From the NCBI GenBank assembly GCA_964057225.1, contig OZ059894.1:11098001-11162000 (forward strand): DNA of 64,000 nt. Reading direction: 5' to 3'. This document shows positions 27,201 through 63,999 of the stretch, piece by piece (the first letter of the stretch is position 1; each line of letters begins with the position of its first letter). This stretch comes from Auanema rhodensis (Eukaryota; Animalia; Nematoda). Position numbers and translations under genes: made by a program. The notes below the pieces were generated by a model that worked only from the letters and a program-made list of their open reading frames with translations, searched no databases and was not told where the DNA came from.

Positions 27201-27259
27201 TTAACCTTATTGTGAACCAATGGAACACATATCGAAGGTTAATTCGATAAGAACGATTA
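27201..27259 (-). pseudogene. U2: U2 nt 38-96 fragment between tandem non-LTR copies 2 and 3
   Basis: Exact 59-bp U2 match. Confidence 0.93.
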
Positions 27260-30200
27260 ATGGTTTATTGAATAACTAATGTTATGAAACAATAAATAAC
27301 CAATAAAAAAGAGCCCAGAATCGGGGAGACGGTATTACCAGTACAACTTAAAACAGCAAGTGATTAAAAAGTACAAAATAAAACACATTACCAACAGAGG
27401 CTAAAACGACTCAAGAGTCGGGGGAGTGGGTTAAAAAAAGTAATGAATAACAAAAAAAATGAATAATAAAGCAGAACAGTGAAAAGTAAATATCAAGTGC
27501 CGCTATGATCAAACAATTTGAGTGCCTACGGCAATGGTGTTAAAAATAAACAACAAAATACATGTACCAATGAAGGTCAGAAAGAGAGAAAGAAAAAAGA
27601 CAAAAATAAGTAATACAAAAAGTAAAAAATATATTACAATCAAATCACAAACAAGTCAATGGATAATTTCTTCTTCATACTGCCTTACACCAGAAACATG
27701 TTCCACGTAGATATTCCTGGCCCACTTGATGGTATCGGCGACGACGAGCTTCTCCATTAGCCGGTTGTAGTGGCTGCTGATCTTGAGTGATCGGAGGGCT
27801 TGTACGTTGAGCGGGTCCATAGTTCCAAGCATTCCTACGACATACGCTTCTACACTAGTCTTATAACCAAGACATTGGTATTGGCTGGCTATGTCAGCAT
27901 ATTTCCTCTCCTTTATCATACGCGCGGCTATCATGGCTTGTCGGCGGTTTTCATAGCTCACTGTAACATCAACGATACTACAGTGTTTTGCGTCATGATC
28001 GACCACTACTATGTCAGGTCGGAGTGTACTATTAATGCCAGGAAGAGGCTGGTTAGTGTAAACTTCTCCGTTTTTAGGCTCTGGCAGGGCTTTGATAAGA
28101 CGGTCCACGATGTTGTTGTGGCGGAGTTGGATTGCTCTCGTGTGAAAGTGGCAGTGTCCAAGAACATGTGCAGCAGTTTCGTTGGGGTAACTACACCTGC
28201 GGCACTGTTTGTTTCCTTCTCCGTGTCTTCTACAGCCATTGAGCTGGAGAGTATTAAGTCGAGCCTTGTGGATGAATCGCCAATCAGCAAACCGTATGAA
28301 ATCTCCCTTCGCCATAAAGTGATTGGACGCTTTGTTGAGCATTGTGACATCAAAGACTTTCCCTTGATCCGGTTTTTGAAGAAGGATCCGAAGGTCTTTC
28401 AGCCATAATGCACGTCGCAGGCTTCTGTGGCATAGTGAAGGTGTTAACAGTTGGTTGTTTAGATTGAGTTCTAAACCACTTTCGAGGCATGTCCAGTTAG
28501 CGTTGATGAGTTTCTTGAGTTGACGCATCGCTACTCTTACTCTAGTCCAGATGGAGGAAACATCAGATGTTTCGGTGTCGAAAATGCCATCAACGGAACC
28601 GTTGTAATATGCAGCTGTCTCATCGTTACTGGCTTGACGTTTAATCCTTTTTGATGCTACTTTTATTGAGTCTTGATGCGCAATATCAGCTACTACAAGA
28701 TCAGATGACTTCAAAAGTTGGTAGGCATGAGTGACTTCACAGACGTCTGACAGGTGTTGGAGTCGAGAGAGACCAAGTCCGCCGTAGTTGGTTGGCAGGT
28801 AGATTGGTTCAGCACTGGCGTTTGGAGGATAGTGCATCCATCTACGGGCACAGCGTTTGAGTTCTTTGTCAAAGGCGACTAGTTTACTCTTTGGGACGTG
28901 GCCATTCGTCATATGAAAATTAAGGCAGGGCATCAGGAAGGTGCGTACTGCGTCAGCTTTCTGCCATTCAGCCAGTAAGGATTTGTCAATTTTTTCCAAG
29001 TGTTGACTCATGATATTCACTGTTGGAACCGCAGACTTATGTAAATGCATTCCAGTAGGGATTCCCAGGTGGGAGTAGCTGTCAAATTTGCTGAGAGCGG
29101 GTAGAAAGCAGCTCTGAAGCATGTATGAGGCTGTTGATATTTTCCCTTTGTCGATCGTCAAAGTGGCGCATTTCGCTGGTTTGAAGGTCAAGCCTGTGAA
29201 ATTAGCCGCATTTGATGCTGCGTCCAACATTTTCTGTAGATCTTCTGATGATGAGGAGACCAGGGCAAGGTCATCGGCGTACGCTAGCACAGCGATGTTG
29301 TGATTGTGTAGCTTATAGCCTGTAGAGGTTTCCAAGATGGTTTTAATTAGAGGTTCAATGGCAAGGTTGAACAGGATCGGAGATAGTGGGGATCCTTGTA
29401 ACACACCTGCGTGAACTGGAATGGTCGAAGTGAGTCCGGAGCCTGTCTGGATTCTTGTAGAGGCATCTGTGTATAGAGCTCGTACTCGGGATATTGAGGC
29501 TTCAGCCATTCCTGACCATCTTAGAACGTCTAGCAGAGTTTCGTGTGGCAGCGATCCAAAAGCGTTTGCGAGATCAAGCCAAGCAATTGCAATTTTCTCA
29601 CGTTTACGTTTAGCGTCTGCAATGGTACTTTGCAACAAAAAGTTGTGTTCCATGCATCCAGCTTTGGCCACAAAGCCCTTTTGGGAGGGAGAAAGTCTTT
29701 TTTCTGCTCTTGCCCATGTTAGCAGTCGATGCGTAAGACAAGCTGAGTACGTCTTACCAATTGTGCACGAAAGTGCTATTGGTCGCCAGTTGTTAATGTC
29801 AGCTTTATCACCTTTCTTATGGATGAGGACGGTGGTCGACTCTTTCCAGGAAAAAGGGATGTGTCCTAGCTTGTGTACGGTGTTAAATATCGCTGCTAAT
29901 ATGTGACCTCCTTGGTCAAATTTCTTCCAGTGCGAGTATCGAAGTCCATCAGCTCCTGGAGCCGTATCGCTGCAACGTCGTATGCGTTCCCAGACTTCCA
30001 AAGGGGTGAAAACACCTTCTAATGGGTCGGTACTAGTTGGCAAATCCGGTCTGGTGACTGTGATGGGGAGGGCTGGGCCTTGACTGCTGTGAACAGAAAG
30101 GAAGTGTTTTTCAACATCTGCAGATGGTATGGTGCAGGTTTCACTTTGTTCTCCGAGCAGTTGTCGAAAGGCTTTCTTCTTGTTGGCCCTCCAAAGCTTC

Positions 30201-30986
30201 TGGATCTTCATCGCCTGGGTTTTTTGGTCTTCCTCAGGTTGTGTGTGTGGTCGGCGCCTTTGTCGGAAGTTGGGAACTTTGATCATAATGTCAAGAGACT
30301 TTCTGATTGTGTCTACCAACTCTTCCAGGACCTGCTCGAGCTCACTTTTGCACACTACCTTTTTAATTCTATCCACCCAAATATTTTCAGAGTTTCTATT
30401 CGGATCAGGGTCGGCAAAAGATGGTTCTGTACTCGGAACCCTGATCTCGTTGAATATTTCACTCTCTCGCGGAAGGGGGGAAACTTCGGCCTCTGGGGAC
30501 AAGTCCAGAATTGGGGCCTCAAACAAGCGTACCGTTGATGGAGATCCTTGTTCCTGTCCACTGGATGATGTTTCCTCCATTGTACGCTCCTCCACGGGCG
30601 GGGTGGTCGTCCTTGTGCCTGGTGGGCGGGTGTTCCTGATCCTCCGCAATATAGGGCGGGAACTGGGCTCTCTCGGAGATAGAGGTGAGATCACCACAGT
30701 TTCCTCTATGATGCGGAGACATCCTTCAGCTTTTTTCTGATGGCTTTTAACGGCCTTCAGATTGCTGGTGAGGCCACAGGCACGGCACTCAAATTCTACT
30801 CTGACCTCATGTTCTCTCCGAAGATGGCGGACGAGACCATTGTGGTCTGAGTAGGATCGCGGAATAGGAGCGCAGATTGAACACGAAAAAGGGCTCTGAA
30901 GAGGCACCTTTAGCTTGTAAAGCCCTTGCTCCATCTCTAGCAGATCTAAAGACTTACGTAGTACAGTTGCAATATCGATTTAGCCA
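27260..30986 (-). mobile_element. U2-specific non-LTR retrotransposon, copy 3 (tandem with copy 2)
   Basis: Near-identical; separated from copy 2 by U2 nt 38-96. Confidence 0.92.
27656..30934 (-). CDS. Non-LTR RT/RLE protein, 1092 aa
   Basis: Intact ORF. Confidence 0.96.
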   Translation of the reverse strand: MEQGLYKLKVPLQSPFSCSICAPIPRSYSDHNGLVRHLRREHEVRVEFECRACGLTSNLKAVKSHQKKAEGCLRIIEETVVISPLSPREPSSRPILRRIRNTRPPGTRTTTPPVEERTMEETSSSGQEQGSPSTVRLFEAPILDLSPEAEVSPLPRESEIFNEIRVPSTEPSFADPDPNRNSENIWVDRIKKVVCKSELEQVLEELVDTIRKSLDIMIKVPNFRQRRRPHTQPEEDQKTQAMKIQKLWRANKKKAFRQLLGEQSETCTIPSADVEKHFLSVHSSQGPALPITVTRPDLPTSTDPLEGVFTPLEVWERIRRCSDTAPGADGLRYSHWKKFDQGGHILAAIFNTVHKLGHIPFSWKESTTVLIHKKGDKADINNWRPIALSCTIGKTYSACLTHRLLTWARAEKRLSPSQKGFVAKAGCMEHNFLLQSTIADAKRKREKIAIAWLDLANAFGSLPHETLLDVLRWSGMAEASISRVRALYTDASTRIQTGSGLTSTIPVHAGVLQGSPLSPILFNLAIEPLIKTILETSTGYKLHNHNIAVLAYADDLALVSSSSEDLQKMLDAASNAANFTGLTFKPAKCATLTIDKGKISTASYMLQSCFLPALSKFDSYSHLGIPTGMHLHKSAVPTVNIMSQHLEKIDKSLLAEWQKADAVRTFLMPCLNFHMTNGHVPKSKLVAFDKELKRCARRWMHYPPNASAEPIYLPTNYGGLGLSRLQHLSDVCEVTHAYQLLKSSDLVVADIAHQDSIKVASKRIKRQASNDETAAYYNGSVDGIFDTETSDVSSIWTRVRVAMRQLKKLINANWTCLESGLELNLNNQLLTPSLCHRSLRRALWLKDLRILLQKPDQGKVFDVTMLNKASNHFMAKGDFIRFADWRFIHKARLNTLQLNGCRRHGEGNKQCRRCSYPNETAAHVLGHCHFHTRAIQLRHNNIVDRLIKALPEPKNGEVYTNQPLPGINSTLRPDIVVVDHDAKHCSIVDVTVSYENRRQAMIAARMIKERKYADIASQYQCLGYKTSVEAYVVGMLGTMDPLNVQALRSLKISSHYNRLMEKLVVADTIKWARNIYVEHVSGVRQYEEEIIH

Positions 30987-32418: not shown

Positions 32419-32518
32419 TCGTAGAAAATCCGAGTTGACAAGAAATCACTTGTCAAGAAACAATAAGACGATAAAAATATCGCTGAATCTGAAATATCCA
32501 TTGAGGAAGGCTAAAATA

Positions 32519-35500
32519 ATGTCCTCCGCTCAAAGATATATTTTCCAAATGGGGAGAGAATTAGAATTTTTGAATAAACTGAATTCTAAAGTTGAAAACT
32601 ATAAGAAAATGACCGATTACTCAGAATTGTCTGAGCCGGTAAATCAAATTATTGCGCAAGAGAATGAATGTGCAAGAGTTAAAAATTACTTGAATATTTT
32701 GGAGAATAAACTCCAATCAATTGAAACCATTGAAATTAATTTTCAAAGAGTTTGTGAGCTTTTAGAAGAAGAGCACCAAAAAGAATTAAACAAAAAATTT
32801 ACAAAATTCGAAGAAGGTGAAAAAGGAGACATCCGTGGCAATGCCACGTTAATAATTCTGGAATTGAATGACAAATTGATATTCTTAAAAAATCTTATTG
32901 ATAAAAATAAAGAAAAAATCAAAGATATGGAAATACAACTTGAATTACAACAACTTCGGGAAAGAGTTGAATATACAGAAGAAAAAGAATATGAAAATTG
33001 TACAAACGAGGTACAAGAAAAACAAAACAGTTTACCCGATCAGGTAGTGCATGATCAGCATGTTAATGAAGTAAGACTGATTAACCAAATACTGCAAAGA
33101 CCCGTATTAAAAACTCCAACCTTTGACGGTACTCCGGAAAAATTCCCTTTATTCTGGGATAGATTCATGAGAATGATTGATAACAATGAATCTTTCTCTA
33201 TAAGTGAAAAAGTGAACTTCCTATGTGAGTCCTTATCAGGTGAAGCCGAATATCTTCTTAGGGGAATTCCCGGTACCGAAGAAAACTATGAGTTTATGAA
33301 AAATTGTTTGAAGGAAGAATATTCCTCATACGCTGTTGATACAGCAACGCTGATCAACAAGTTGAATAAGGTGCCAAAAGCTTCAAGACGAGCCGATAGT
33401 TGTGCTCAAACGCTAAGAGAGATAAAAGCTCTGCTGCGACAGATTCAAGCGGCGGGAGGATCATTAACCAAAGAGCTTTATGTTGCTACCGTACTCAATA
33501 AATTCCCATTTGAAATAATCAAAGATATTCACATCAAACAAAATTTTGAATGGTCCCACGAGAAAATCATTGAACATATTTCGGCGGAAGTAAAACTACT
33601 ACAGATGACTGAAAACACTGAAACACTGTATCTCAGTAACAATGAAAAAAGAAAAAATCCAGATGGTGATCAAACTAAAAAACAATTTCGATTGAATGAA
33701 GTTAAAGATTTGAAACAAAGAAGGAATTGCGTTTTTTGCGCGAACAATTCACACAATAGCCATATGTGTCCTGTTGAAACAACGGAAAAAAGGAAAATTT
33801 TAAGAGAAAAAAGGCTATGTTATGTATGCTTTGCAGACAATCATCAAAGCAAAAACTGCACATGGCCAAAGTTTAAATGCAACAGCTGTCATGATGATCA
33901 CAACATTTCAGTTTGTTACCAAAATAAAAGAAATCAGAATAGAAATGGAGTCATCACCAACATTTCTTTACAAAGGGATAATGATGAAGAAAAGACCAGA
34001 AATAATCAAACAATTATTCCAAAGAAAGCACATGAAGAACCCACAAGTTTAACCACAATTGTTGGTAATCATGACGTAGAAAAAGGCCAAATAATTTTAC
34101 GAACAGCAAAAGCAAATTTGTTCAATTACAATAGCGATAGTTATGAGAAAGTTAACATTATTTTTGATGATTGTTCTCAACGATCTTTTATCAGAGAAGA
34201 TCTAGCAAAAAGGATGAAACTACCAGTTAAATCCAAACATAAAAAAACATTTCATGGTATTGGAGGAATGAAACATTCTCATGTTTCAAGTATAGTTAAC
34301 ACAATATTCTATACTAAAGAGAAAAATTTAATTGTAACTGAAATGCTCACTAAACCAAAAATCAGTTCCCACATATATAGTCCTTATCTTTCAAGAAAGG
34401 ATTTGAGTTTCATTAAAGAAAACAATATTATATTAGCCAACACCGATACAAATGGGGAAGTTTTTGAACCGGATGTTTTAATTGGACAAGATAGATTAAA
34501 ATTGTTTGTAAAAGACAATGAAGAATTCAGACTTCCCTCTGATCTTTTATGTAAAGGATCTGTATTTGGAACTCTTATAAATGGAGAAACTAAACTTGAA
34601 AAAATTGTAACTCTGTGTAGCATTGAAGAGGAACAAAGTCATGAACCACCTCCAGAAACAAAACTGAAAGAACTTTTCCTTATCGATACTATTGGAATAA
34701 GCACCATAGTAGATAACAATGCAGAAGCAGAGAATTATCTTAAAGAATATAGTAAAGAACTATCCATTAAAGCCGGGAGAATTGAAGCTCCGTTTCCATT
34801 TAAAAATTATTTGAATAAATTGAAAAATAATAAATGGCCAGCTTTTCATAGATTCATGACATTATGGAAAAATCTACACTCTAATAAAGAACAACTAGAA
34901 TGGTATAAAAAATTAATAAATGAATACATTCAAAAGGGAATTATCGAGCCAATTGTTGATGAATCAGCCGAAGATGGATTTTTCTTACCACATCATGGAG
35001 TGTGGAGAAAAGAAAAAGCTCGACCTTTAAGAATCGTGTTTGATGCTTCAGCAAAACAAAAAAATAGTCCATCGTTGAACCAAGTTATGCATTCAGGCCA
35101 AACATTTATTCACAAAATTCATGATATATTAATAAAATGTAGAAAAAGTCCAATAATAATAACCTGCGACATTGAGTCAGCATTTTTACAAATAAGTATT
35201 AAAGAAGAGCACAGAAAATATTGTAAATTTTTCTGGATTAGAAACGAAAATGAATCGGTAAATAAATATAACGTCATGACATACCAATTCAAACGGCTAC
35301 CATTTGGTATAACAGCGTCCCCGGGTATATTAAGCATGAGCTTAGCTTGGTACCTCAATAATCATACCGACCCTTACGCTAGTCACTTGCTCGATTCTTT
35401 ATACGTTGACAATATAATTTTATATGCAAACAGTGTTGAAGAAGCTAAGATAAAATGCGAAAAAGCCAAGAAAATCTTACAAGGCATTTCTATGAATTTA

Positions 35501-38500
35501 AGAGAATTTATGAGCAACAATCCAAAAGTTACTGAAGATATGAACAATGAAGACAAATACCCACATAATACTACCAAAATTTTGGGTTTAAATTATGATA
35601 CAAAATTAGATTTATTCGTTCTTATACTTAAATTAAAGAAATTTGAAATCAATACGCACAGGAACATGTTAAGTCAAATACATTCAATATTTGATCCATT
35701 AGGTATGGCAAGCCCATTGATTTTACCATTAAAATTATTATTAAGAGAATCAAGTGATCAATTCAAGGGTTGGGATGTTGAATTACCCCAAGAAATAACA
35801 CATAAATGGAATTTAGTCATAAATGAATTATTAAATGAAAAGGAATTGAGACTTGAAAGAAAGTTAAACCTGAATGACTCTATATTATGGGTATTTACTG
35901 ATGCTAGTAAACTAGCCATTGCTGCCTGCACATACATTGAAACCAATGGTAAAATAAGCCAACTTGTAAGCGGAAAGTCGAAAATTGCAAAAAAGGGAAA
36001 TCTAACTATCCCAAGACTAGAACTCATTGCCATACTATTAGGTATTATATTAGCTGATAATATCACATCTACAACCAATCACCTTAAAACTGTACACGTA
36101 GCCAGTGACAGTAAGGTAGCCTTACATTGGATAGCTAACCATCAGAAAACTTTACCACCATATGTAGGCTGTCGCGTCGACAATGTAAGGAAGTATATAG
36201 ATAAATTGAAGGAAAATAACATTAAAATCAAACTTTTTCATGTGAATGGTGATTATAACCCAGCCGATATTGGTTCTCGAGGAGCTTGTCTCCAAGAACT
36301 AAGTGATTCTATGTGGATTAAAGGACCACAATGGTTAACCCAAACAAAGTCACACATTGAAGAAATTGAATATGAGCCTATTTGGAATATAACAACCTTG
36401 ATCGATACCGTTGAACAACAACAAATAACACAAATACCAGTTGAAGATATATTCAAATTACGTAGCAACAACTATACCTTACTGAAAACTATAGTTAAAT
36501 TAAGTAAATTCTTGAGACATTGGATCATAAAAGTACATCCCACAGCTATAACAAGGTTAAATAAGGTAATGCAATTAGATGAAAACTGGCAAACTACAGC
36601 TAATGATATTGAGATTATAACCAAACTACTAATAAGTAAAGCACAACAGCATGTAACAATAGATCTCCTCACGAAAAAACATGAAGGTTTTGTATTTTTT
36701 CTCGATGAAGAAATAATCAGAGTTCGTAGTAGATTGAACAACTCGGAATTACCGTTTGAAACTCAAAATCCCATATATCTTCCAAGGGATTCTCCGTACA
36801 CAGAACACATAATTATGCATTTACACAGAGAATGCATGCACCAAGGAAGAGATTTTGTTCTAACACTCTTGCGTCAAAAATACTTTTTAAGTAAACCATC
36901 AAGCATAGTCAGATCAGTTCTCAAAACATGCACAATCTGCAATAGATACAACGCTTTGCCGTTTGGAACGTCCTTAATGCCAGCATTGCCTAAGGATAGA
37001 GTAATTCTAACAAAACCATTCATGAGTACAGGTTGTGACTTATTAGGTCCAATAACCATAAAGGATGGTAAAAAGATATTTATATGTCTGTTTACTTGTT
37101 TAGCTATAAGAGCTATACACTTAGAAATAGTTTTTGACCAATCAACAAAGGCATTCTTAAACGCTTTCGAAAGGTTCATTGGAAGAAGAGGTATTCCAGA
37201 AATAATACGAAGCGATAATGGAGGAAATTTCTTATTAAGTGCTAAAGTAATAGAATTTTACACAGAAAACCATGAATCTAAAAATGAAAAAACATTAACC
37301 AATTATCTTGCCGAAAAGAATATTAAATGGTACTTCAACACACCACAGGCTCCATGGAAAGGTGGAACATGGGAAAGACTAGTAGGACTAACAAAGTTAG
37401 CACTATACAAAACAATTGGAAATAGATTAATGTCAATTGATGATATACATACAGTAATTGTAAAAATCGAAACAATTTTGAATACTCGCCCGCTTACACA
37501 TCCGAACCCATCCAACCTGAACATTTTGCCTATCAGACCTTGTGATTTTTTAAACCGTTCCATCAGGTTTACACTTTCTTCAAACGTATCGAATACCCGA
37601 ATTTATGATAAAACTATCAATAGCAGGACAATACAAACTATAGAGCAAGCCATTGAAGCAATAGAGTTATCTAACGATGTAACTCAATTATTCTGGAAAA
37701 AATTCTATTCAGAGTATTTACTGTATCTTAGAGATATTTACAAACACAACAGAAAACAACCTGCAACGAACGCTAAGAAACCACAAGAAGGCGAAGTTAT
37801 TATAATACAAAATGAGGATTCAAGTAGAGGTAAATGGAAATTAGGACGCATAATAGAACTAATAAAAAGTGCAGATGGGGAAGTTAGATCTGCAAAACTA
37901 ATAACTGGCACTGGTCTCATAACAACTCGTTCATTAAATCACATATATCCACTAGAAGTGAGAAACGCAGAAGCAGCACCGTTTGCGTCAGAACCTCACT
38001 CAATGAGATACAATAAAAAATACCAAGTGAATCCATTTTTAATCACCGGGACGGTAACACAAAAAGGAAATCGGGTTGAAAATATTGAAATTATTGAAAA
38101 TACTCAAGAAAGTGAACAAAGTAACAATGTAATACCACTCGAAATCTATACACCCAACATGAATATCATCAACGACGCAGGAGACGAAAATGATGCTAAT
38201 AATACGAACTTAGAACAAGAGGAAGATCAAACAAATGAGATAACTCTTCAAACCGAAAATGAATCCAAACCTTCAAATCTAAATAGATGGTTCAGAACAA
38301 AAACACAGGGTAGTCAAGCAGCGGTAAGAAGTTATTTTAAGAAAAATAAAATAAAAACAAATGTTCCAAAAGTAGCTCTTCTTGGAATAATTCCAACGAT
38401 TGAGGCTACATGCCAATCCTCTGAATTGCTTACAGCGGAAGCATTATATTTCCCACAATGTAATCCATTAACGACTTTAATAACATTTTTCATACCAATT

Positions 38501-40351
38501 ATACTATTATTTACTATATTAGCAATTTGTAAAAGAGTATTGAAAGCTCATGAAAATGACCAATATTGGTATAAATTTTTAAATGATAATTGGCAAACGA
38601 TACAAACCGAAGTTAGAAGTGGAAAACCTAATTCAAAAATATTAACAAGTTCAGACGATGTAGCCGTACAAAAGGAAACCATAGTAGCCACGAAAATTGA
38701 CAATGTAACTCCAAAATGGAAAAATGATATTCCAGAAACTATTAAAATTCCAAATTACATGAGAACATCATCATTCACTTCATTACAATTATCGATAGCA
38801 CTCATGGTATTATTAATAACAGTGGAATCTTGTTCAAACTCACATATTAAGCATTCAATAAATATAATTTGCATTAATCGGACAAATTGCTATCAAGAAT
38901 ACGATAATGAAATCAATTTCAATAAAGGCATAAGAGACGCTTGCTTAGAATTCATTTACCAAAATAAATCTATCGGTAAAATAGAAATAACGAAAAAACC
39001 AACAGAATACATTTGCCAGAAAAGTACGCTATATTATACTCGAGAAAGCACAATTCAATACAAAACTCAATATTCCTGTTATGGAACAGGATCTTGTAAT
39101 CACACTTGTGAAGCTATAAATCCTATTGGACAATTACAAGAATTTGATAAAGAAGAAGGACCAACACAAGTTGGTTGTGCTAGGCGATGTGGCTCTCTTT
39201 TCTGCGGATGTTGGTCTTTAGAAGACGGTTGCTCATTCTATCAAACTGAATTTAAACCAATCAATGAAATAGTTTATGAAATAGTAGAATGTGATTCTTG
39301 GGAAATAAATATACCATTAGAGGTAAAGTATGATCTATTTAAACACAAAGCCAATATTAATATTCTTTTAAAACCATACGACACTGTTAATTTTCCAAAC
39401 TTTAATATAAGCTCAATCTCCCATATTGTACCACCAACCCGATATTTAAACACCAAATATGCATTATCAACCATAAAAAGTTATTACATGGAACCTCATA
39501 CTATGAGTGAAGTAGCATGCAAAACCAAAGATCAAACTACAAATGAATTTAACTCTTGTAAAATACTGAAGTTATGTAACTGTAAAATATCAAAAAGGGA
39601 AGAGCTAACATGTACCTGTCCATCTGATAATATTTTCAATCAGGCAAACTTATTACCCATGAACACCAAGAACACCCTAATTACCATGAAAGAAAACAAA
39701 TTAACACTTATTCCTCAAACTGATGAATCAACTGTTGTTCTTCAACTACAAGGGAATGTGTCATCTCGTACCTTCCTGTACGACTTTCCTTGTCGACCAG
39801 AATTTAAAAAACTTTCCGGGTGTCACAGCTGTAGAAGAACGGCTGTTGCCGAGTTTATGTGTATATCACAAAAGGATTCTTGGATCACAATGCAATGTAG
39901 TGAGAACATATACATGATTGAATGCGCCCCACACATGCCACTTACTGCTGTGGAATATTACTCAGAGCATTCTGAAATCTATGAAGAATGCTTCGTAACA
40001 TGTGCTAATGAAAAACACCACGTGATCATACAAGGAACATTACAATGGGATAGTGAAATCCCAGATGTTGAAAAAACAATCATCAACATTGTGACAAATG
40101 CTAACACCTGGAGAAATATTTTGGATGTAATTAAAACAAATTTGGCATTATCATTATGCTTCCTCCTGATAACTGTTTTTATACCAGTATTATCTTATAT
40201 AATAGGAGTACAAGCAATAATTGTAATCATCATAATCATACAAAAATTAATCGTTCAGATGATAAAAATTGTAATGATCATTACATCATTACTGAGAAAA
40301 ATGCTCAGGAATCCTAGACACAGAGCTGAGTCTAGCACAAATAAAAATTAA
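32519..40351 (+). CDS. BEL/Pao Gag-PR-RT-RNaseH-IN-Env polyprotein (phlebovirus Gc-like class II env); first ATG at 32519
   Basis: PTFDG Gag; three Cys-His knuckles; FDDCSQRSF protease; LRIVFDAS, RLPFG, YVDN RT; FTDAS and TIPRLEL RNase H; H-H-CTIC, SDNG and WERLVG integrase; Cys-rich Gc-like region with C-terminal TM. Confidence 0.95.
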   Translation: MSSAQRYIFQMGRELEFLNKLNSKVENYKKMTDYSELSEPVNQIIAQENECARVKNYLNILENKLQSIETIEINFQRVCELLEEEHQKELNKKFTKFEEGEKGDIRGNATLIILELNDKLIFLKNLIDKNKEKIKDMEIQLELQQLRERVEYTEEKEYENCTNEVQEKQNSLPDQVVHDQHVNEVRLINQILQRPVLKTPTFDGTPEKFPLFWDRFMRMIDNNESFSISEKVNFLCESLSGEAEYLLRGIPGTEENYEFMKNCLKEEYSSYAVDTATLINKLNKVPKASRRADSCAQTLREIKALLRQIQAAGGSLTKELYVATVLNKFPFEIIKDIHIKQNFEWSHEKIIEHISAEVKLLQMTENTETLYLSNNEKRKNPDGDQTKKQFRLNEVKDLKQRRNCVFCANNSHNSHMCPVETTEKRKILREKRLCYVCFADNHQSKNCTWPKFKCNSCHDDHNISVCYQNKRNQNRNGVITNISLQRDNDEEKTRNNQTIIPKKAHEEPTSLTTIVGNHDVEKGQIILRTAKANLFNYNSDSYEKVNIIFDDCSQRSFIREDLAKRMKLPVKSKHKKTFHGIGGMKHSHVSSIVNTIFYTKEKNLIVTEMLTKPKISSHIYSPYLSRKDLSFIKENNIILANTDTNGEVFEPDVLIGQDRLKLFVKDNEEFRLPSDLLCKGSVFGTLINGETKLEKIVTLCSIEEEQSHEPPPETKLKELFLIDTIGISTIVDNNAEAENYLKEYSKELSIKAGRIEAPFPFKNYLNKLKNNKWPAFHRFMTLWKNLHSNKEQLEWYKKLINEYIQKGIIEPIVDESAEDGFFLPHHGVWRKEKARPLRIVFDASAKQKNSPSLNQVMHSGQTFIHKIHDILIKCRKSPIIITCDIESAFLQISIKEEHRKYCKFFWIRNENESVNKYNVMTYQFKRLPFGITASPGILSMSLAWYLNNHTDPYASHLLDSLYVDNIILYANSVEEAKIKCEKAKKILQGISMNLREFMSNNPKVTEDMNNEDKYPHNTTKILGLNYDTKLDLFVLILKLKKFEINTHRNMLSQIHSIFDPLGMASPLILPLKLLLRESSDQFKGWDVELPQEITHKWNLVINELLNEKELRLERKLNLNDSILWVFTDASKLAIAACTYIETNGKISQLVSGKSKIAKKGNLTIPRLELIAILLGIILADNITSTTNHLKTVHVASDSKVALHWIANHQKTLPPYVGCRVDNVRKYIDKLKENNIKIKLFHVNGDYNPADIGSRGACLQELSDSMWIKGPQWLTQTKSHIEEIEYEPIWNITTLIDTVEQQQITQIPVEDIFKLRSNNYTLLKTIVKLSKFLRHWIIKVHPTAITRLNKVMQLDENWQTTANDIEIITKLLISKAQQHVTIDLLTKKHEGFVFFLDEEIIRVRSRLNNSELPFETQNPIYLPRDSPYTEHIIMHLHRECMHQGRDFVLTLLRQKYFLSKPSSIVRSVLKTCTICNRYNALPFGTSLMPALPKDRVILTKPFMSTGCDLLGPITIKDGKKIFICLFTCLAIRAIHLEIVFDQSTKAFLNAFERFIGRRGIPEIIRSDNGGNFLLSAKVIEFYTENHESKNEKTLTNYLAEKNIKWYFNTPQAPWKGGTWERLVGLTKLALYKTIGNRLMSIDDIHTVIVKIETILNTRPLTHPNPSNLNILPIRPCDFLNRSIRFTLSSNVSNTRIYDKTINSRTIQTIEQAIEAIELSNDVTQLFWKKFYSEYLLYLRDIYKHNRKQPATNAKKPQEGEVIIIQNEDSSRGKWKLGRIIELIKSADGEVRSAKLITGTGLITTRSLNHIYPLEVRNAEAAPFASEPHSMRYNKKYQVNPFLITGTVTQKGNRVENIEIIENTQESEQSNNVIPLEIYTPNMNIINDAGDENDANNTNLEQEEDQTNEITLQTENESKPSNLNRWFRTKTQGSQAAVRSYFKKNKIKTNVPKVALLGIIPTIEATCQSSELLTAEALYFPQCNPLTTLITFFIPIILLFTILAICKRVLKAHENDQYWYKFLNDNWQTIQTEVRSGKPNSKILTSSDDVAVQKETIVATKIDNVTPKWKNDIPETIKIPNYMRTSSFTSLQLSIALMVLLITVESCSNSHIKHSINIICINRTNCYQEYDNEINFNKGIRDACLEFIYQNKSIGKIEITKKPTEYICQKSTLYYTRESTIQYKTQYSCYGTGSCNHTCEAINPIGQLQEFDKEEGPTQVGCARRCGSLFCGCWSLEDGCSFYQTEFKPINEIVYEIVECDSWEINIPLEVKYDLFKHKANINILLKPYDTVNFPNFNISSISHIVPPTRYLNTKYALSTIKSYYMEPHTMSEVACKTKDQTTNEFNSCKILKLCNCKISKREELTCTCPSDNIFNQANLLPMNTKNTLITMKENKLTLIPQTDESTVVLQLQGNVSSRTFLYDFPCRPEFKKLSGCHSCRRTAVAEFMCISQKDSWITMQCSENIYMIECAPHMPLTAVEYYSEHSEIYEECFVTCANEKHHVIIQGTLQWDSEIPDVEKTIINIVTNANTWRNILDVIKTNLALSLCFLLITVFIPVLSYIIGVQAIIVIIIIIQKLIVQMIKIVMIITSLLRKMLRNPRHRAESSTNKN

Positions 40352-52433: not shown

Positions 52434-52527
52434 TTAACCTTATTGTGAACCAATGGAACACATATCGAAGGTTAATTCGATAAGAACGATTACTACACTT
52501 TGATCTTAGCCAAAAGGCCGAGAAGCG
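52434..52527 (-). pseudogene. U2: U2 nt 3-96 leader of non-LTR copy 4
   Basis: Exact U2 match, then joined to spacer ~1.26 kb further upstream. Confidence 0.93.
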
Positions 52528-53555
52528 AACTTCATATTTATTGTAATAGAAAATTTTATTTTCAGACGTCTTGGTTAACAATGATATGTTTTACCCCCTT
52601 ATAATTTTTATCATAATGTTCCTTATACGGAACGCTCAATGAAACTTGCTTCCAGAAAAATTTCTTTCTATTTTTTCTTCATATGTACGTAGATACTATA
52701 GAGAACTATGATAGAAAACTTTAACATTCACGAAATCATCATTTCTCATTACGCTACGGAGGTTTAAAAAGCTGTGTTTTACCTTATAATAGACCGGAAA
52801 ACCCTTGTGTTAAAACTGGACCGTTTTTACACATATAAAAATGTCCCGTATTCGGGACCCTAATGTAACTTTTGATTCCCTATATTTTTTTTCATGAAAT
52901 TTACAATCTACTGTAGAAAGAAGAATTATTTTTATAAAAACTGTAAATTTTTGAAAAATGAAAACAAAACGAAAACAAAAACAACTTTTTTTTGAACATT
53001 TTCTCACACAAGGGTCCCCCCTTACCTACTTTTTTTCTCATTACTCGTTTCAACCTCATCCGATCACTCTGCAAACATGTTTAATCGTTCTAACTTGTTG
53101 AAATACGTCTTAAAAGTCTAAACAACATGCATATGCATAATAGAAACCACCCGAATAGGCCCCCACGCACTAAACGAGATATATACATTACCAGTATAGT
53201 AATAGAACACATATTGAAGATTAATTCGATAAGAACAATTTATTGACGTAGAGAATGTTTGTTCCGAAAAACTACAATATTAAACTATAAAAGTAACAAA
53301 AGCGTAGAGGCAGCAAAGACATGAATAAACATAAATGTAAATACAGAATTACCAGGTAGTACATAAGTATGACAAAAAATTATAAGAAAGCCATGAAAAT
53401 AGAAGGTTTGTGAACAAATGAGAGGTACATCTTTGATCGTATAGTCATTTCTAAACCGTTCGTATGCTGCAGCATCGTCATAAGCGTCACTCAAGTTGAA
53501 TTTCCATGTGTACTACACGATTTTCATTCTTATTGTTACATTCTTTCCCTGAGGG

Positions 53556-53703
53556 AATGGGCCGTTCCCGCCAGCAGTGCAAGAGCGGGTCGACCCGTGA
53601 GGTGGAGCTAGCAAGCCAGCATCTACCTCAAGTCTCAAAAATCGGTTAACCTTATTGTGAACCAATGGAACACATATCGAAGGTTAATTCGATAAGAACG
53701 ATT
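53556..53703 (-). pseudogene. U2: U2 3' part (nt 39-186), interrupted by the 783-bp element
   Basis: Junction gaacgatt|tattgaag. Confidence 0.93.
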
Positions 53704-54486
53704 TATTGAAGTAGTCAATGTTTGTCCCGGAGGACTACAATTTTAAAATAATTACTGAAGCCGTTAGGCAGCGAGAAAATAGTAAGGATACTATCCGCAC
53801 TGAGTGCGTCGTATCATGAAAAAAAAAAGAGAATGTAAAGAAGGTAGAGCATAGACTTAGATAATGACATCACTAGTTGTAGATTTGTGGCATCTGCAGC
53901 TGCGGGTATGAGGATCAGCATGAACAGATTAAATTCACATGAACAAAGTGGGAACATTTTGAGGAACTTAGGGAACGGAGTAATGCGATCATTTTCAAAA
54001 ATAGAATTACCTATCTGTAGCTACGGATAAAGAGGAATAGCTTTGAATAGATGGAAATTTACATGAAAATATGTGACATTATGAAGCAGCACAATAGATA
54101 ATGAGACTACGGAAAAAATAGTATCCTTTTGCGTTCTTGATGGATCTGCGGCTCCCGTCATTGGCTGCGGTTTCGGTGCTCAGCTGGCTAGTCGTCGGCG
54201 TTGGACATCGTGGATCGTAATGAGGTTTTCCATAGATTCCGGCTCGGCTGGTTCTGTGTGCGTTCTTCTCCGTTGTCGTGGTGGTGTTCTTCTCTGCTTT
54301 TTCCTACTCCAAAATTTAACTATACTGAAGGTAGAGCTTTGTTTCACAATTGCTACCAAGAGTGAAGAACATTAGCTACTACCAACAGCATAGGACCGCC
54401 TCAAGGCCTGGTAGATCAATCAGTGTTGCTTCAATCACCAAGTATTGCGGCCTAGGCCCTTGGATCAATTCACAACACCAGTATAG
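53704..54486 (-). mobile_element. 783-bp non-autonomous (SINE-like) U2-targeting element
   Basis: Same U2 site as the autonomous element, flanked by duplicated U2 nt 39-79, ends TTCAATA(A), no ORF >=60 aa. Confidence 0.85.
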
Positions 54487-54565
54487 CAATGGAACACATA
54501 TCGAAGGTTAATTCGATAAGAACGATTACTACACTTTGATCTTAGCCAAAAGGCCGAGAAGCGAT
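54487..54565 (-). pseudogene. U2: U2 nt 1-79 leader of the 783-bp element, upstream region intact
   Basis: Exact U2 match. Confidence 0.93.
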
Positions 54566-55007
54566 ACAGCATAGCCATGAGTATCAAAGACATCAAGCAA
54601 ATGTATCGTACTTGTTACGAGTGCACTCTCTCATTTGAATATAAAAGTGTGGTTTGACAATCTTGACTGTACAGGTCATAAATGGCTCATATAAACTGTG
54701 GATTTACTCAACTTTTGGACTTATTTTTTTCTTATTCGAAGCGCTGCACTTTTTTCTATTCTTTTTATTCAAATACTTGTATATAGTTTTATATGTACGG
54801 TTGCAAAGTTTCCGAATATTTTATATATTTTTATACAATAATTAGGAGAAGGTTAATACAATGAAATCTCCCAACTTTACAGTGTTTGTATTGCTTACAG
54901 TATCTAGAACAACCACTCTTGTAATATTAGAGCACATATCAATCAACAACTTTTTCTAGTTATCAAAGCTTTTTTATTTCTTCAAGATATTTCAAATAAA
55001 ATATAAA

Positions 55008-55126
55008 AGCTTACGACACCCGGGATTCCCAAGCCGTCTCCGATCCAAGTACTAACCGGGCCCAACGTTGCTTGACTTGCCAGATCGGACGGGATGGCGT
55101 ACTTTCAACGTGGTATGGTCGTAAGC
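55008..55126 (-). rRNA. 5S: 5S rRNA
   Basis: Same sequence. Confidence 0.97.
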
Positions 55127-55367
55127 AATGTTATATTCTTCATTATCAGTTATATCACTCTAAATCTTGTTGTTAATAGTTAGGACCACAAAGAAAACAA
55201 CAGGAACAGTAACAAATGAAATGCCCAAACTTTACAGTGTTCGAGTTATTTACAGTATCTAAGACTACCTCTGTCGTGTTATTAGAGCAAACATTCGATT
55301 AACAACAACTTTTTTTTAGTTATCAAAGCTTTTTTATTTCTTCAAAAAATTTCAAATAAAATATAAA

Positions 55368-57005: not shown

Positions 57006-59008
57006 ATGGTTTATTGGATAACTAATGTTATGAAACAATAAATAACCAATAAAAAAGAGCCCAGAATCGGGGAGACGGTATTACCAGTACAACTTAAAAC
57101 AACAAGTGATTAAAAAGTACAAAATAAAACACATTACCAACAGAGGCTAAAACGACTCAAGAGTCGGGGGAGTGGGTTAAAAAAAGTAATGAATAACAAA
57201 AAAAATGAATAATAAAGCAGAACAGTGAAAAGTAAATATCAAGTGCCGCTATGATCAAACAATTTGAGTGCCTACGGCAATGGTGTTAAAAATAAACAAC
57301 AAAATACATGTACCAATGAAGGTCAGAAAGAGAGAAAGAAAAAAGACAAAAATAAGTAATACAAAAAGTAAAAAATATATTACAATCAAATCACAAACAA
57401 GTCAATGGATAATTTCTTCTTCATACTGCCTTACACCAGAAACATGTTCCACGTAGATATTCCTGGCCCACTTGATGGTATCGGCGACGACGAGCTTCTC
57501 CATTAGCCGGTTGTAGTGGCTGCTGATCTTGAGTGATCGGAGGGCTTGTACGTTGAGCGGGTCCATAGTTCCAAGCATTCCTACAACATACGCTTCTACA
57601 CTAGTCTTATAACCAAGACATTGGTATTGGCTGGCTATGTCAGCATATTTCCTCTCCTTTATCATACGCGCGGCTATCATGGCTTGTCGGCGGTTTTCAT
57701 AGCTCACTGTAACATCAACGATACTACAGTGTTTTGCGTCATGATCGACCACTACTATGTCAGGTCGGAGTGTACTATTAATGCCAGGAAGAGGCTGGTT
57801 AGTGTAAACTTCTCCGTTTTTAGGCTCTGGCAGGGCTTTGATAAGACGGTCCACGATGTTGTTGTGGCGGAGTTGGATTGCTCTCGTGTGAAAGTGGCAG
57901 TGTCCAAGAACATGTGCAGCAGTTTCGTTGGGGTAACTACACCTGCGGCACTGTTTGTTTCCTTCTCCGTGTCTTCTACAGCCATTGAGCTGGAGAGTAT
58001 TAAGTCGAGCCTTGTGGATGAATCGCCAATCAGCAAACCGTATGAAATCTCCCTTCGCCATAAAGTGATTGGACGCTTTGTTGAGCATTGTGACATCAAA
58101 GACTTTCCCTTGATCCGGTTTTTGAAGAAGGATCCGAAGGTCTTTCAGCCATAATGCACGTCGCAGGCTTCTGTGGCATAGTGAAGGTGTTAACAGTTGG
58201 TTGTTTAGATTGAGTTCTAAACCACTTTCGAGGCATGTCCAGTTAGCGTTGATGAGTTTCTTGAGTTGACGCATCGCTACTCTTACTCTAGTCCAGATGG
58301 AGGAAACATCAGATGTTTCGGTGTCGAAAATGCCATCAACGGAACCGTTGTAATATGCAGCTGTCTCATCGTTACTGGCTTGACGTTTAATCCTTTTTGA
58401 TGCTACTTTTATTGAGTCTTGATGCGCAATATCAGCTACTACAAGATCAGATGACTTCAAAAGTTGGTAGGCATGAGTGACTTCACAGACGTCTGACAGG
58501 TGTTGGAGTCGAGAGAGACCAAGTCCGCCGTAGTTAGTTGGCAGGTAGATTGGTTCAGCACTGGCGTTTGGAGGATAGTGCATCCATCTACGGGCACAGC
58601 GTTTGAGTTCTTTGTCAAAGGCGACTAGTTTACTCTTTGGGACGTGGCCATTCGTCATATGAAAATTAAGGCAGGGCATCAGGAAGGTGCGTACTGCGTC
58701 AGCTTTCTGCCATTCAGCAAGTAAGGATTTGTCAATTTTTTCCAAGTGTTGACTCATGATATTCACTGTTGGAACCGCAGACTTATGTAAATGCATTCCA
58801 GTAGGGATTCCCAGGTGGGAGTAGCTGTCAAATTTGCTGAGAGCGGGTAGAAAGCAGCTCTGAAGCATGTATGAGGCTGTTGATATTTTCCCTTTGTCGA
58901 TCGTCAAAGTGGCGCATTTCGCTGGTTTGAAGGTCAAGCCTGTGAAATTAGCCGCATTTGATGCTGCGTCCAACATTTTCTGTAGATCTTCTGATGATGA
59001 GGAGACCA
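57006..59008 (-). mobile_element. U2-specific non-LTR retrotransposon, copy 5, 5'-truncated
   Basis: 3' 2.0 kb only, same type as copy 3; joined at gagacca|ttgtgttaaaac to array spacer. Confidence 0.92.
57402..59008 (-). pseudogene. C-terminal half of the RT/RLE ORF, truncated just after YADD
   Basis: Begins at VSSSSEDLQ; the apparent ATG is created by the junction. Confidence 0.9.
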
Positions 59009-59759
59009 TTGTGTTAAAACTGGACCGTTTTTACACATATAAAAATGTCCCGTATTCGGGACCCTAATGTAACTTTTGATTCCCTATATTTTTTTTCATG
59101 AAATTTACAATCTACTGTAGAAAGAAGAATTATTTTTATAAAAACTGTAAATTTTTGAAAAATGAAAACAAAACGAAAACAAAAACAACTTTTTTTTGAA
59201 CATTTTCTCACACAAGGGTCCCCCCTTACCTACTTTTTTTCTCATTACTCGTTTCAACCTCATCCGATCACTCTGCAAACATGTTTAATCGTTCTAACTT
59301 GTTGAAATACGTCTTAAAAGTCTAAACAACATGCATATGCATAATAGAAACCACCCGAATAGGCCCCCACGCACTAAACGAGATATATACATTACCAGTA
59401 TAGTAATAGAACACATATTGAAGATTAATTCGATAAGAACAATTTATTGACGTAGAGAATGTTTGTTCCGAAAAACTACAATATTAAACTATAAAAGTAA
59501 CAAAAGCGTAGAGGCAGCAAAGACATGAATAAACATAAATGTAAATACAGAATTACCAGGTAGTACATAAGTATGACAAAAAATTATAAGAAAGCCATGA
59601 AAATAGAAGGTTTGTGAACAAATGAGAGGTACATCTTTGATCGTATAGTCATTTCTAAACCGTTCGTATGCTGCAGCATCGTCATAAGCGTCACTCAAGT
59701 TGAATTTCCATGTGTACTACACGATTTTCATTCTTATTGTTACATTCTTTCCCTGAGGG

Positions 59760-60855: not shown

Positions 60856-61298
60856 TGTTTGGACTATGAATCCAAGAGTTATTCCAGGGGAATAGCTGTA
60901 GTATTACTCGTTCGACGTGATACAGGAGTTAATACCGTTTAGGAGTATTAACGAAGGTTGATACTCGAAGAGAATATTATCAGGGTTGAACTTCGCAGAT
61001 TTGGGTTTAAAAGGTTTATTAAATAAAGATGGTACAGTGGTAGAAAAGTTAGATATTAAAGTGAAGGTTTCTTGGGTTTATATATGATTTAGCTTAAGGG
61101 TGATATTTGATATTTGAATAGAAAGGTCACGTTAATGTAAACTATAGAGGTGATAAAAGTTCAACATCCTTTGAGAATGTTGCGCAATAGGTTAATGATA
61201 CAATTATTCGGTTAATAGATAATGGTTCAGTATTTCAGAAGAGTTATGTTTATATTGTAAATCATGATATTTTGTTAATAGTCAGGCATTTGCCGACA
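60856..61298 (-). repeat. Probable 3' LTR (~443 bp)
   Basis: Minus strand TGTCGGCA...CCAAACA, preceded by cccggcaa (compare gccgggaa in element 1), TATATAAA ~61084, AATAAA ~61020; partner LTR is outside the window. Confidence 0.65.
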
Positions 61299-63999
61299 TT
61301 GCCGGGCGAGGGTTGCGATTTGATTTTTTCAAACAGCAATAAGAGAGGATAGCTGGCAGAAGAAAAGGAGCGAGAAAGGAGAGGGCTGTGTATAAGATAT
61401 ATGAACATGCTGTGACTGCAGCTACGACGGGTACGATCCATTTCCAATTATTCTGGATCACTTCTATTAGAGGTTCCAAGTTGGGGAGATTCCAAGAGAG
61501 TCCAGATGTTCCATTATGTAGTTTGATCAGTTCTTCTGAAATTGTAGTGTCACTTATGTAGTGTAATCTGGTACTTAGCTGGATAAATTGCTTTGTTGCT
61601 CTTCCGCATGTTAGAGTACAATTTTCTTGTACTTTGGGTTCATTGAAGTATAGTTTTATCGTTGTGGCGGGATTTTTGTCGGAGCATCGAATTATAGTAG
61701 AAAAGGAATCGCAGTTCAGTATTGCATTTAACTCGTCCTTTGTTTCACATGTCATGTTTAGCGTTGTTCCTTCTCTGCATTTATAACATCCTGTTATCAT
61801 TTGAAAATCTGAAAAACAAGGATGTCTATTAGTGTATAGACTTTCGATGCTAAATTGCGGGTTTTGCATTGTGAGCGTTGATTCTTCCATTTTTGATAGA
61901 ACTGTTATAGTTCCTGCTTCTTTTGTTATCCTATAATTCGTATTAATTTTTGGAAGTTCATATTTTTTCAGTTCTCTTTGCGTCGCTGAATCGCAATTGC
62001 AAGAGAGCTGTGCTGCGGCCCCCAAACATGGGCAAGGCTTTCTTATGTGGCATGCATTAAACTTATCTGCCGCCATTCTTGCATTGCTGCATATAACAGC
62101 TGGTTTTATTTGCTCCGTTATCATGTAGTTGTTTGTCTCAGATGTTAAAAAAATTTTGTTGTACAGTTCCGTTGTTGCTTTTGCTGTGACTGACGAAATC
62201 TGTAATGATATTCCGTGAAACTCGTATTTTCGGTAGGGCTGTAGCAAAATGTCGTATTTTTGAGTGTTGTTGAGGTATATGATCGTTAATTTTGCTTGCA
62301 CTTCTTGCTTCCATTGTATGCATTTGATCTCTTCGTATACTTCTTTGTTCTCTGGTTGATAAGTTGGTCTAAATAAAATGCATCCTTCTATAGGAAGTCC
62401 ACAGCTGTTGAATAGTCCTCCTCCGGCTCTGGTGCAGTAGGTTCTTCCAGGATTTTCGTATGCAGAATATAGTTCGGATACAAATGTATCCTGTCGAATA
62501 TCATCGCATCCGGTGCCCCAGGGGCAATGAGTTGTACCGGCGCATCTATGAGAGGAGTGAATGGTTAGGTTAGTTATTCTAGTGAATCCTTGCGAAACTT
62601 TTTGGCATGAAAATTTATGTTGAATTAATTGAATTTCTAGTTTTCCTATAGTGGAGTTTTGATATTTGATGTAGGAGCAGAGAGAGTTTTGTAAGGGATT
62701 GAATGAAATTTCTTCGTTGGTTATTTTGGTGCAGTTTTGTATATCGTCGCAAAAGATTTCTATGTTTTTATGAGCGTTGGGGGATCCACAAGCTTGCGCC
62801 TGGCATATGAGAAAAAAGAGTGTGAATAGGAGGGAAGGGATGTACGAAATGGTGGGCTCGTTCTGTCGGCGGTATGTTCTTAGTCTTCTGTAGATTAGAC
62901 CACAGCTAATGAATAAAAGAGCGCAGCCAATTAATGGCGTAAGTACTATAAGAATAGCTAAGATTGGATTACAGTGAGGATTGCCTATGATATGTAGGAT
63001 GAATGGCGGTGGGAAGTCACATGGGTGAGGAAGTTTGCATGTTTGATTCTGAGTTGACTCCAAGTTGAAGCGTGAAACGGATGCTGTTTTTGGTAAAACT
63101 GAAATAGGTAGTGGGATTATTTCGGATTGGTGTGCAGAGAGATTATGGCAGCTGGAGTCGATGCATATTGTTGAGTGGTTTGGTTGTGCTGGAAATACCA
63201 CTTGTGATGTTGAACACCTGATTATCGGTTGGGTCATAGCAACTGAAAATATTTGTATTAGCATCAGAAAACGAAAAATGTTCCTTAGCCGGTTCGGATT
63301 GGTTGGTGTGTGTGAAAGATGATTGACAGTTATTTCCTGTGATTCTCTTCCTTTGTCGAAATTGTCCTTGAGCTCGAGTGGGTAGAGTTTTTCAACTGGT
63401 TTCGTGAGTTCTTTGCCGTTTCCTAATTTAATTCTTGCGGATCTGAATATGTTATCCGAAGACGGTAGTAGGGCAGTAATGCGCGCCATTTGCCAGTTGC
63501 ATCTGTTCAGGTTATCTTCTTCCACAAGGACCACCTCATTTAGCGTTGGGTGGTTAGAACTTCTGTGCGTTTGTTTTGTGGATGCGTGGGCATTACGGAG
63601 ACACAGAAGATATTCCTTGGACCACCGATCCCAGAATGATTCCGCTATAATTTCCACTTTCTGCAGATTTTCAAATGCTTCTTTATTCGTTTGTATTGGG
63701 TTTGGTTCATCCAAGGCTTGTCCCAATTGTTCTACGTTACCTCCTGGTACGAGAACGGGGCTGCCGTTATTCAAGAAATCTGCTGGTGTCAGGGGTCGGT
63801 CGTCTACATTATCTGAATTTGTATAGGTGATCGGTCTGGAATTTATTATTCCTTCGATCTTTATAATTGCCGTCGTTAGTTGGTCTTTGTTGACCAATTT
63901 AAGCTGCAATGATTTGTAGAGCGAAGTTTTTACTATCGCAACCAGTCGCTCCCATACTCCTCCAGTCCATGGGGCACTGGGAGTGTTAAAAATCCATGT
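61282..63999 (-). CDS. BEL polyprotein C-terminus: integrase plus phlebovirus-like Gn/Gc envelope, 5' partial
   Basis: Frame stays open to the window edge; signal, Cys-rich Gn, TM, second signal, Gc (HRCAGTTHC, GGGLFNSCGLPIEGC, GCYKCREG), TM. Confidence 0.92.
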   Translation of the reverse strand, partial: TWIFNTPSAPWTGGVWERLVAIVKTSLYKSLQLKLVNKDQLTTAIIKIEGIINSRPITYTNSDNVDDRPLTPADFLNNGSPVLVPGGNVEQLGQALDEPNPIQTNKEAFENLQKVEIIAESFWDRWSKEYLLCLRNAHASTKQTHRSSNHPTLNEVVLVEEDNLNRCNWQMARITALLPSSDNIFRSARIKLGNGKELTKPVEKLYPLELKDNFDKGRESQEITVNHLSHTPTNPNRLRNIFRFLMLIQIFSVAMTQPIIRCSTSQVVFPAQPNHSTICIDSSCHNLSAHQSEIIPLPISVLPKTASVSRFNLESTQNQTCKLPHPCDFPPPFILHIIGNPHCNPILAILIVLTPLIGCALLFISCGLIYRRLRTYRRQNEPTISYIPSLLFTLFFLICQAQACGSPNAHKNIEIFCDDIQNCTKITNEEISFNPLQNSLCSYIKYQNSTIGKLEIQLIQHKFSCQKVSQGFTRITNLTIHSSHRCAGTTHCPWGTGCDDIRQDTFVSELYSAYENPGRTYCTRAGGGLFNSCGLPIEGCILFRPTYQPENKEVYEEIKCIQWKQEVQAKLTIIYLNNTQKYDILLQPYRKYEFHGISLQISSVTAKATTELYNKIFLTSETNNYMITEQIKPAVICSNARMAADKFNACHIRKPCPCLGAAAQLSCNCDSATQRELKKYELPKINTNYRITKEAGTITVLSKMEESTLTMQNPQFSIESLYTNRHPCFSDFQMITGCYKCREGTTLNMTCETKDELNAILNCDSFSTIIRCSDKNPATTIKLYFNEPKVQENCTLTCGRATKQFIQLSTRLHYISDTTISEELIKLHNGTSGLSWNLPNLEPLIEVIQNNWKWIVPVVAAVTACSYILYTALSFLAPFLLPAILSYCCLKKSNRNPRPAMSANA

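Follow-up and report, generated by a model that had tools for sequence, protein, structure and literature searches.

To our knowledge, few non-autonomous partners of site-specific RLE retrotransposons exist, the documented cases being the R2 and R1 SIDEs of Drosophila. The R2 SIDEs of the Drosophila 28S rDNA are built from two parts of their own helper, that is, its 5' ribozyme and its 3' UTR (Eickbush and Eickbush 2012, PMC3414825). As far as Utopia is concerned, it has been reported that the U2 sequence downstream of the element starts at nt 39, that the 5' boundaries differ between families, that tandem insertions occur and that the duplications are of at most 20 bp; non-autonomous derivatives are not mentioned in the text of that paper (Kojima and Jurka 2015, PMC4640811), and the literature that we searched yielded no report of a non-autonomous Utopia partner. 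The crocodilian SINEU elements, in turn, are non-coding retroposons with a U1- or U2-derived 5' part and no internal promoter, whose transcription from flanking sequences has been proposed; they are dispersed, prefer the Mariner-N4 target and have been attributed to Tx1-type (APE) elements (Kojima 2015, PMC4494074).

The window analyzed in this work, i.e., the whole stretch of DNA (64,000 nt), carries U2 snRNA and 5S rRNA genes throughout its minus strand, as detected with Rfam. Mapping one unit back onto the window revealed a tandem U2-5S unit of about 2.1 or 2.5 kb, in which the U2 gene is followed by a spacer, by one or two 5S genes and by the U2 upstream region. The array is interrupted by BEL/Pao-type sequences:

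32435-40351, plus strand: ORF of a BEL/Pao-type LTR retroelement (one ORF of 2638 aa)
61282-63909, minus strand: second BEL/Pao copy, partial, at the window end

The long ORF embeds the domains of a Pao peptidase, an RT, an integrase zinc-binding domain and a Phlebovirus G2-like fusion glycoprotein.

One minus-strand U2 gene of the array is split, and consists of U2 nt 1-79, a 783-nt non-coding body and U2 nt 39-190. The parts of this locus are the following:

54566..55215, minus strand: upstream region of the interrupted U2 gene (spacer with the promoter), 650 nt, 99.5% identity to intact units
54487..54565, minus strand: leader, U2 nt 1-79, ending just past the loop of stem-loop IIb (BLASTN versus intact U2, 100%; Rfam U2 alignment)
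53704..54486, minus strand: insert body, 783 nt, non-coding, single copy in the window
54477..54486, minus strand: head decamer CTATACTGGT, body nt 1-10, directly after U2 nt 79; the same decamer occurs in the spacer fossil
54320..54460, minus strand: structured 5' domain with two long hairpins side by side (body nt ~27-95 and 94-167), from folds versus shuffles
53704..53750, minus strand: 3' tail, 47 nt, conserved with the spacer fossils (79-81% identity to 11 fossils)
53702..53707, minus strand: AATAAA across the insert/U2 3' junction, its last bases coming from U2 nt 39-40
53552..53703, minus strand: U2 nt 39-190 downstream of the insert, 100% identity; the start at nt 39 equals the published Utopia 3' flank

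We consider it quite probable that the insert is a non-autonomous, non-coding retroelement lying at the Utopia site in U2 (nt 38/39). The coordinates and the anatomy proposed by an earlier sequence-only reading of this DNA were right, both U2 parts showing 100% identity, and the upstream region is intact as that reading had stated, in that the last 110 nt before the interrupted U2 are the same in all the intact U2 genes of the window, in addition to the 650 nt listed above. The segment U2 39-79 (41 nt) is found on both sides of the insert. The 100% identity of both the U2 flanks and the pair of 41-nt repeats points to a recent insertion event.

The statement that the body contains no substantial ORF was also borne out, the longest one in any frame being of 59 aa. 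Blastx against 100 Utopia-like proteins detected no coding remnant in the body (best E 0.5), and neither an exact look-up of seven small body ORFs nor a homologue search with the 59-aa ORF gave a match. Similarly, Rfam returned over the insert no family beyond the U2 leader, and no ribozyme at E up to 10. We also considered whether the body might be a DNA transposon, and rejected this possibility on account of the lack of terminal inverted repeats.

The label of SINE, under which the insert had previously been placed, was not retained. Classical SINEs have a tRNA, 7SL or 5S RNA head with an internal Pol III promoter, whereas the head of the insert is U2, for which no internal promoter has been reported (PMC4494074), and the body contains runs of T5, T6 and T10, which would stop Pol III. 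The tail of a classical SINE is common to that of its partner LINE; the insert shares an octamer with AATAAA with the Utopia-type element resident in the array, and its partner may be another family. The insert resembles SINEU in that the U1- or U2-derived head of the latter is matched by U2 nt 1-79 placed before the body, if the leader, as we infer, belongs to the transposed unit. Unlike SINEU, however, the insert lies inside a U2 gene at an RLE-type Utopia site, with its head continuous with a real U2 promoter; no Tx1/APE element was seen in the 64-kb window.

The resident autonomous element encodes a protein of 1092 aa with an RVT_1 domain; the window contains four complete copies of its ORF and a fifth that is truncated. 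The relatives of this protein are R2-like/Utopia-like proteins of nematodes, a scorpion and insects (40-56% identity), and each full element sits between U2 nt 96 and U2 nt 38-40. On the basis of the RT homologues and of the published nt-39 flank, the element is therefore to be regarded as Utopia-type. Exact look-up of its protein gave no match, its 5' end matched no ribozyme family in Rfam at E up to 10, and no U2 flank was found in the closest relative with DNA (L001, from a metagenome). The copies whose boundaries are most relevant here are:

16133-16186, minus strand: joint of the full-length Utopia copy 16156, whose leader starts from U2 nt 3, with the joint 31 nt before the normal U2 start
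52505-52558, minus strand: joint of the full-length Utopia copy 52528, whose leader starts from U2 nt 2 and is joined to mid-spacer
58975-59034: 5'-truncated Utopia copy 59004, starting at body position ~1729 of 3727
23491-30986: two full Utopia copies in tandem, with only U2 nt 38-96 (27201-27259) between them

The joint of copy 16156 is accompanied by a 34-nt deletion, and at copy 52528 about 890 nt are gone, including a 5S gene and the U2 upstream region with the promoter; in both cases the leader meets non-homologous upstream DNA with a microhomology of 1-3 nt. The truncated copy 59004 is joined at position 941 of the unit, in the spacer, and the rest of that unit is missing up to U2 nt 37. 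Judging from these joints, the three copies are to be considered independent TPRT events, and TPRT is active in this system. In addition, the 3' junction of Utopia varies, from ...AAACC followed by ATCG (12327-12340) to ...AAACCATT followed by AATCG in the others (e.g., 23491-23500), a variation that indicates separate insertion events. Since the leaders of copies 16156 and 52528 begin at U2 nt 2-3 and abut unrelated DNA, the U2 leader of Utopia travels in the RNA; the joints thus indicate that the template RNA of Utopia has its 5' end at U2 +1 or immediately beside it, and that U2 1-96 is part of the copied unit. The layout of the tandem pair is the same as that of the insert-type fossil junction described below.

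The comparison of the insert with this element revealed an identical site and very different sequences. The 3' junction of the insert is the same as that of the resident Utopia and corresponds to the published Utopia site (PMC4640811), with the downstream U2 starting from nt 39, in agreement with the idea that both occupy one U2 position. Indeed, Utopia resembles the insert in this site, in the family-specific 5' boundaries, in the tandem insertions and in the presence of AATAAA beside the 3' junction; it differs from it in possessing one ORF with zinc fingers, RT and restriction-like endonuclease, the insert having no RT or RLE ORF. The duplications in this window, 41 nt for the insert and 59 nt for the resident Utopia, also differ from the published ones (at most 20 bp), and the leader ends at U2 nt 79 in the former and at nt 96 in the latter. 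When the insert was aligned with the 5' end, the 3' UTR and the whole body of Utopia, shuffle-controlled z values ranged from -0.4 to 2.4, and BLASTN also detected no significant similarity. The sole likeness is TTCAATAA at the 3' end, an octamer containing AATAAA, exactly as had been maintained from inspection of the letters.

This octamer deserves some attention. In the 1014-nt U2-insert-U2 context, the only AATAAA is the one spanning the 3' junction, the body ending in TTCAATA+A, and in the resident Utopia an AATAAA lies 6-9 nt before the 3' junction. The same hexamer was found 2-14 nt before the Utopia/U2 junction in five out of six Utopia relatives in public loci reached through Utopia homologues, four of them in a scorpion array and one in a beetle:

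L002:7087-7161, 13797-13871, 18238-18312 and 22417-22491: scorpion junctions with AATAAA
L003:6006-6080: beetle junction with AATAAA

The sixth, a spider Utopia element (L005:8525-8599), has no AATAAA near its 3' junction. The octamer may best be read as a conserved 3'-end signal of this type of element, and in this respect its sequence ties the insert to the Utopia life style. However, since AATAAA is common to Utopia relatives, the octamer is weaker as evidence for a partnership with the resident family; being largely a poly(A) signal, it could also have been selected independently. In the same way, the different ends of the leaders (nt 79 versus nt 96) would fit another helper equally well.

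A further question concerns the origin of the U2 1-79 leader. In this array Utopia has an RNA-borne leader, which makes the same origin likely for that of the insert; by analogy, it would most simply be explained as RNA-borne too, and the view of the insert as a U2-headed element appears reasonable on this ground. If the leaders are RNA-borne, then their ends at nt 79 and nt 96 would be inherited and not remade by a nuclease. A different possibility, which we regard as unlikely, is that the insert is non-autonomous without being U2-headed. According to this idea, the 41 bp would be a true TSD, left after a different Utopia-type enzyme had made a staggered cut of the top strand at U2 79/80, the RNA would start with CTATAC..., and the helper would be a second autonomous family outside the window. 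The variety of Utopia 5' boundaries among families, with published TSDs of 0 to 20 bp (PMC4640811), is in agreement with this, as are the scorpion Utopia copies with a U2 duplication of about 16-18 nt, which also separates tandem copies. The different boundary (nt 96) and the unrelated tail of the resident Utopia point in the same direction, and the head decamer is kept in the fossil, as a real 5' end might be. On the other hand, the Utopia copies starting at U2 nt 2-3 beside foreign DNA argue for an RNA-borne leader in this very array, no promoter is apparent inside the body, and the 64 kb contain no second autonomous family.

The nearest analogue of the insert is represented by the R2 SIDEs, and we hold with moderate confidence that the insert is probably a previously undescribed non-autonomous variant. 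Both are short, non-coding and non-autonomous, and both occupy the exact site of an RLE retrotransposon in a tandem array of RNA genes; moreover, the R2 SIDEs rely on co-transcription with the host gene and on TPRT by the helper, two features that would be attributed to the insert as well. There are also differences. A derivation of both ends from the resident element, as in the SIDEs, was not found for the insert, which shares only TTCAATAA with the resident Utopia and has no ribozyme detectable in Rfam. Furthermore, the insert keeps the leader of its host gene, whereas the R2 SIDEs cut theirs off, and it resides in a Pol II snRNA gene, whereas the SIDEs reside in a Pol I rRNA gene.

The spacers of the array contain what appear to be older traces of the same architecture. 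In 11 spacers, about 310 nt past the U2 3' end, we found a tail, U2 39-78 and the head decamer, in that order:

53191..53287, minus strand: nearest spacer fossil, with the tail at 53241-53287, U2 39-78 at 53201-53240 and the head decamer at 53191-53200
9352, 11825, 18057, 20516, 22987, 43244, 45715, 48220, 56502 and 59405: U2-like parts of ten further fossils (BLASTN versus U2)

The fossil tail (47 nt, 79-81% identity to the insert tail) can be aligned up to about 75 nt, the U2 39-78 fragment shows 88-90% identity to live U2, and the exact CTATACTGGT follows it (the decamer was read in two units), the chance of a 10-nt match at a fixed position being about 1e-6. All five differences between the fossil U2 39-78 and live U2, as read in two units, are C-to-T or G-to-A, and several differences in the fossil tail are likewise transitions of this kind; decay of the fossils by deamination-type change is suggested. 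No trace of the rest of the 783-nt body was detected in the spacers, even with a scoring scheme tolerant of C-to-T/G-to-A decay.

Each fossil can be read as the junction of two tandem elements built like the insert. Indeed, the leader holds an intact site, so that a further copy can land there, which explains the order tail, U2 39-78, head. As far as can be judged from the letters, the fossils prove that the nt-79 junction, together with the head and the tail, recurred long ago, the junction having been formed or passed on repeatedly over a long period; they do not imply the same 783-nt body. Since they share only the termini with the insert, the fossils may belong to another family. Hence, the proposal that a diverged relative is fossilized in every spacer holds for the junction, present in 11 spacers, and fails for the remainder of the body, to which no homology is detectable; likewise, the BLASTN search in the window for further copies with the nt-79 junction recovered the junction in the 11 fossils but the body only once.

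These data bear on the possibility that the insert is a one-off chimeric retrocopy. In that case, a Utopia RT would have begun copying an unrelated cellular RNA from the U2 nick before switching template to U2 snRNA at nt 79, and there would be no self-propagating family. The single copy in the window and a body unrelated to Utopia might be explained in this way, and the R2 enzyme has been documented to jump onto U12 snRNA and tRNA as templates (PMC3414825). We nevertheless find this very doubtful: the fossils with the same nt-79 junction, the 10-nt head and a tail of about 80% identity speak for an architecture that was inherited or repeated, and the body ends in a Utopia-type arrangement of AATAAA.

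The fossils are also relevant to the idea that the insert is not a retroelement at all, having arisen either by unequal recombination or gene conversion of a U2 gene with a spacer fossil or through misassembly of the tandem array. In favor of this are the highly repetitive nature of the array and the 40 nt of U2-like homology that the fossil would provide. However, apart from the tail (about 47-75 nt) and the 10-nt head, no homology between the body and any spacer is detectable, and the junctions fall exactly at the Utopia site. Furthermore, 13 separate sequencing runs, one of which is a DNA run of a second organism, contain 67-81% of the sampled words of the body, which shows that the sequence of the insert is real. 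Taken together, these observations make an origin of this kind hardly credible. Four runs typed (by guess) as RNA contain 69-77% of the sampled words of the insert; this suggests that the insert is transcribed, although the RNA typing was guessed and the contigs may have come from read-through or DNA carry-over. A metagenome scan with a tail pattern fitting both the insert and the fossil found nothing.

Concerning the structure of a putative insert RNA, the whole body folds no better than shuffled sequences (z 0.1). The folding potential is concentrated at the 5' end, where body nt 87-170 reach -31.9 kcal/mol (z -4.8, an energy that none of 200 shuffles reached), and U2 40-79 plus body 1-177 gives a fold with z -3.2 in which U2 stem-loop IIa is kept; the first 5' hairpin (body nt ~27-95) taken alone is not significant. 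As read by eye, body nt 1-8 (within 54477-54486) are perfectly complementary to body nt 158-165 (54322-54329, minus strand), which form the 3' strand of the stable hairpin; a near-duplicate of the head at body nt 94-101 competes for it. An alternative pairing between the head of the insert and the 3' strand of the hairpin is thus possible on this complementarity.

At the other end, the 3'-terminal stem GTAGTC...GACTAC described by the sequence-only reading has its arms in place (53733-53738 and 53711-53716), but the fold program favors another hairpin, GTCC-TCCG-GGAC (53724-53735), and the tail does not fold significantly better than expected by chance (z -1.0 to -2.0). In the fossil version of the latter hairpin, GTTT-TTCG-GAAC, one C-G pair has become T-A through changes on both sides and one C-G has become T-G; the two-sided change is no more than a hint.

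The comparison can be extended to a scorpion, Centruroides sculpturatus, whose U2 array (KZ493963.1) contains another short element:

L002:6253-7165: short element of about 900 bp

This element resembles the insert in its (degenerate) U2 head, in the 3' junction, which is the same, and in a body DNA unrelated to its neighbors. It differs from the insert in a tail that is 80% identical over about 110 nt to that of the neighboring Utopia and in keeping a remnant of the C-terminus of the Utopia ORF, as seen by eye. It is a candidate SIDE-like derivative of Utopia, resembling an internal deletion, and on the strength of these similarities short Utopia-dependent derivatives may be widespread but undescribed.

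Coming back to the insert as a non-autonomous retroelement, the explanation that, on balance, we favor as a whole is that it was mobilized in trans through TPRT by a Utopia-type RT and restriction-like endonuclease; judging from the one copy examined, it is most likely a parasite of the Utopia copying machinery. The following mechanism can be proposed. The occupied U2 gene would use its own promoter, located upstream, to produce an RNA that has its start at U2 +1 and comprises U2 1-79 and the body, and the AAUAAA at the end of the body would set the 3' end of this RNA slightly inside the downstream U2 sequence. The helper enzyme would then attack a second U2 gene at nt 38/39, nicking its bottom strand, and prime on the insert RNA, the register being given by the tail (hairpin plus UCAAUAA) and by the short U2 3' extension. 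The outcome would be a seamless U2 1-79 leader and an apparent duplication of 41 bp; the intact site within the leader would let another copy land there, giving rise to stacked copies. By analogy with the resident Utopia, we give the full mechanism, with both the U2 promoter and the RNA-borne leader, about an even chance.

More tentatively, and with less than even confidence, it might be speculated that the insert and its relatives represent a distinct class of site-specific non-autonomous retroelements driven by a Pol II snRNA promoter, with a capped chimeric RNA headed by U2(1-79). The U2 head would serve at the same time as a tie to the promoter, as a homology arm for sealing the 5' end and as a means of rebuilding the target site for stacking, and the tail would be independent of the UTR of the helper and would mimic only its terminal signal, with a host, a parasite and a hyperparasite as the levels of the system.

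What the insert means depends on which of these explanations is correct. If it were a one-off or a plain internal deletion, it would be an ordinary by-product of Utopia activity. If, instead, the proposed interpretation is true, the insert would reveal the minimal RNA features needed by the Utopia enzyme, an issue that bears on the use of R2-like enzymes to insert DNA at specific sites. An snRNA promoter would also be seen to drive a mobile element in nature, and a host-gene leader would be shown to act as a homology arm in 5' integration. Finally, a host/parasite/hyperparasite system of three levels would exist inside a family of spliceosomal RNA genes.
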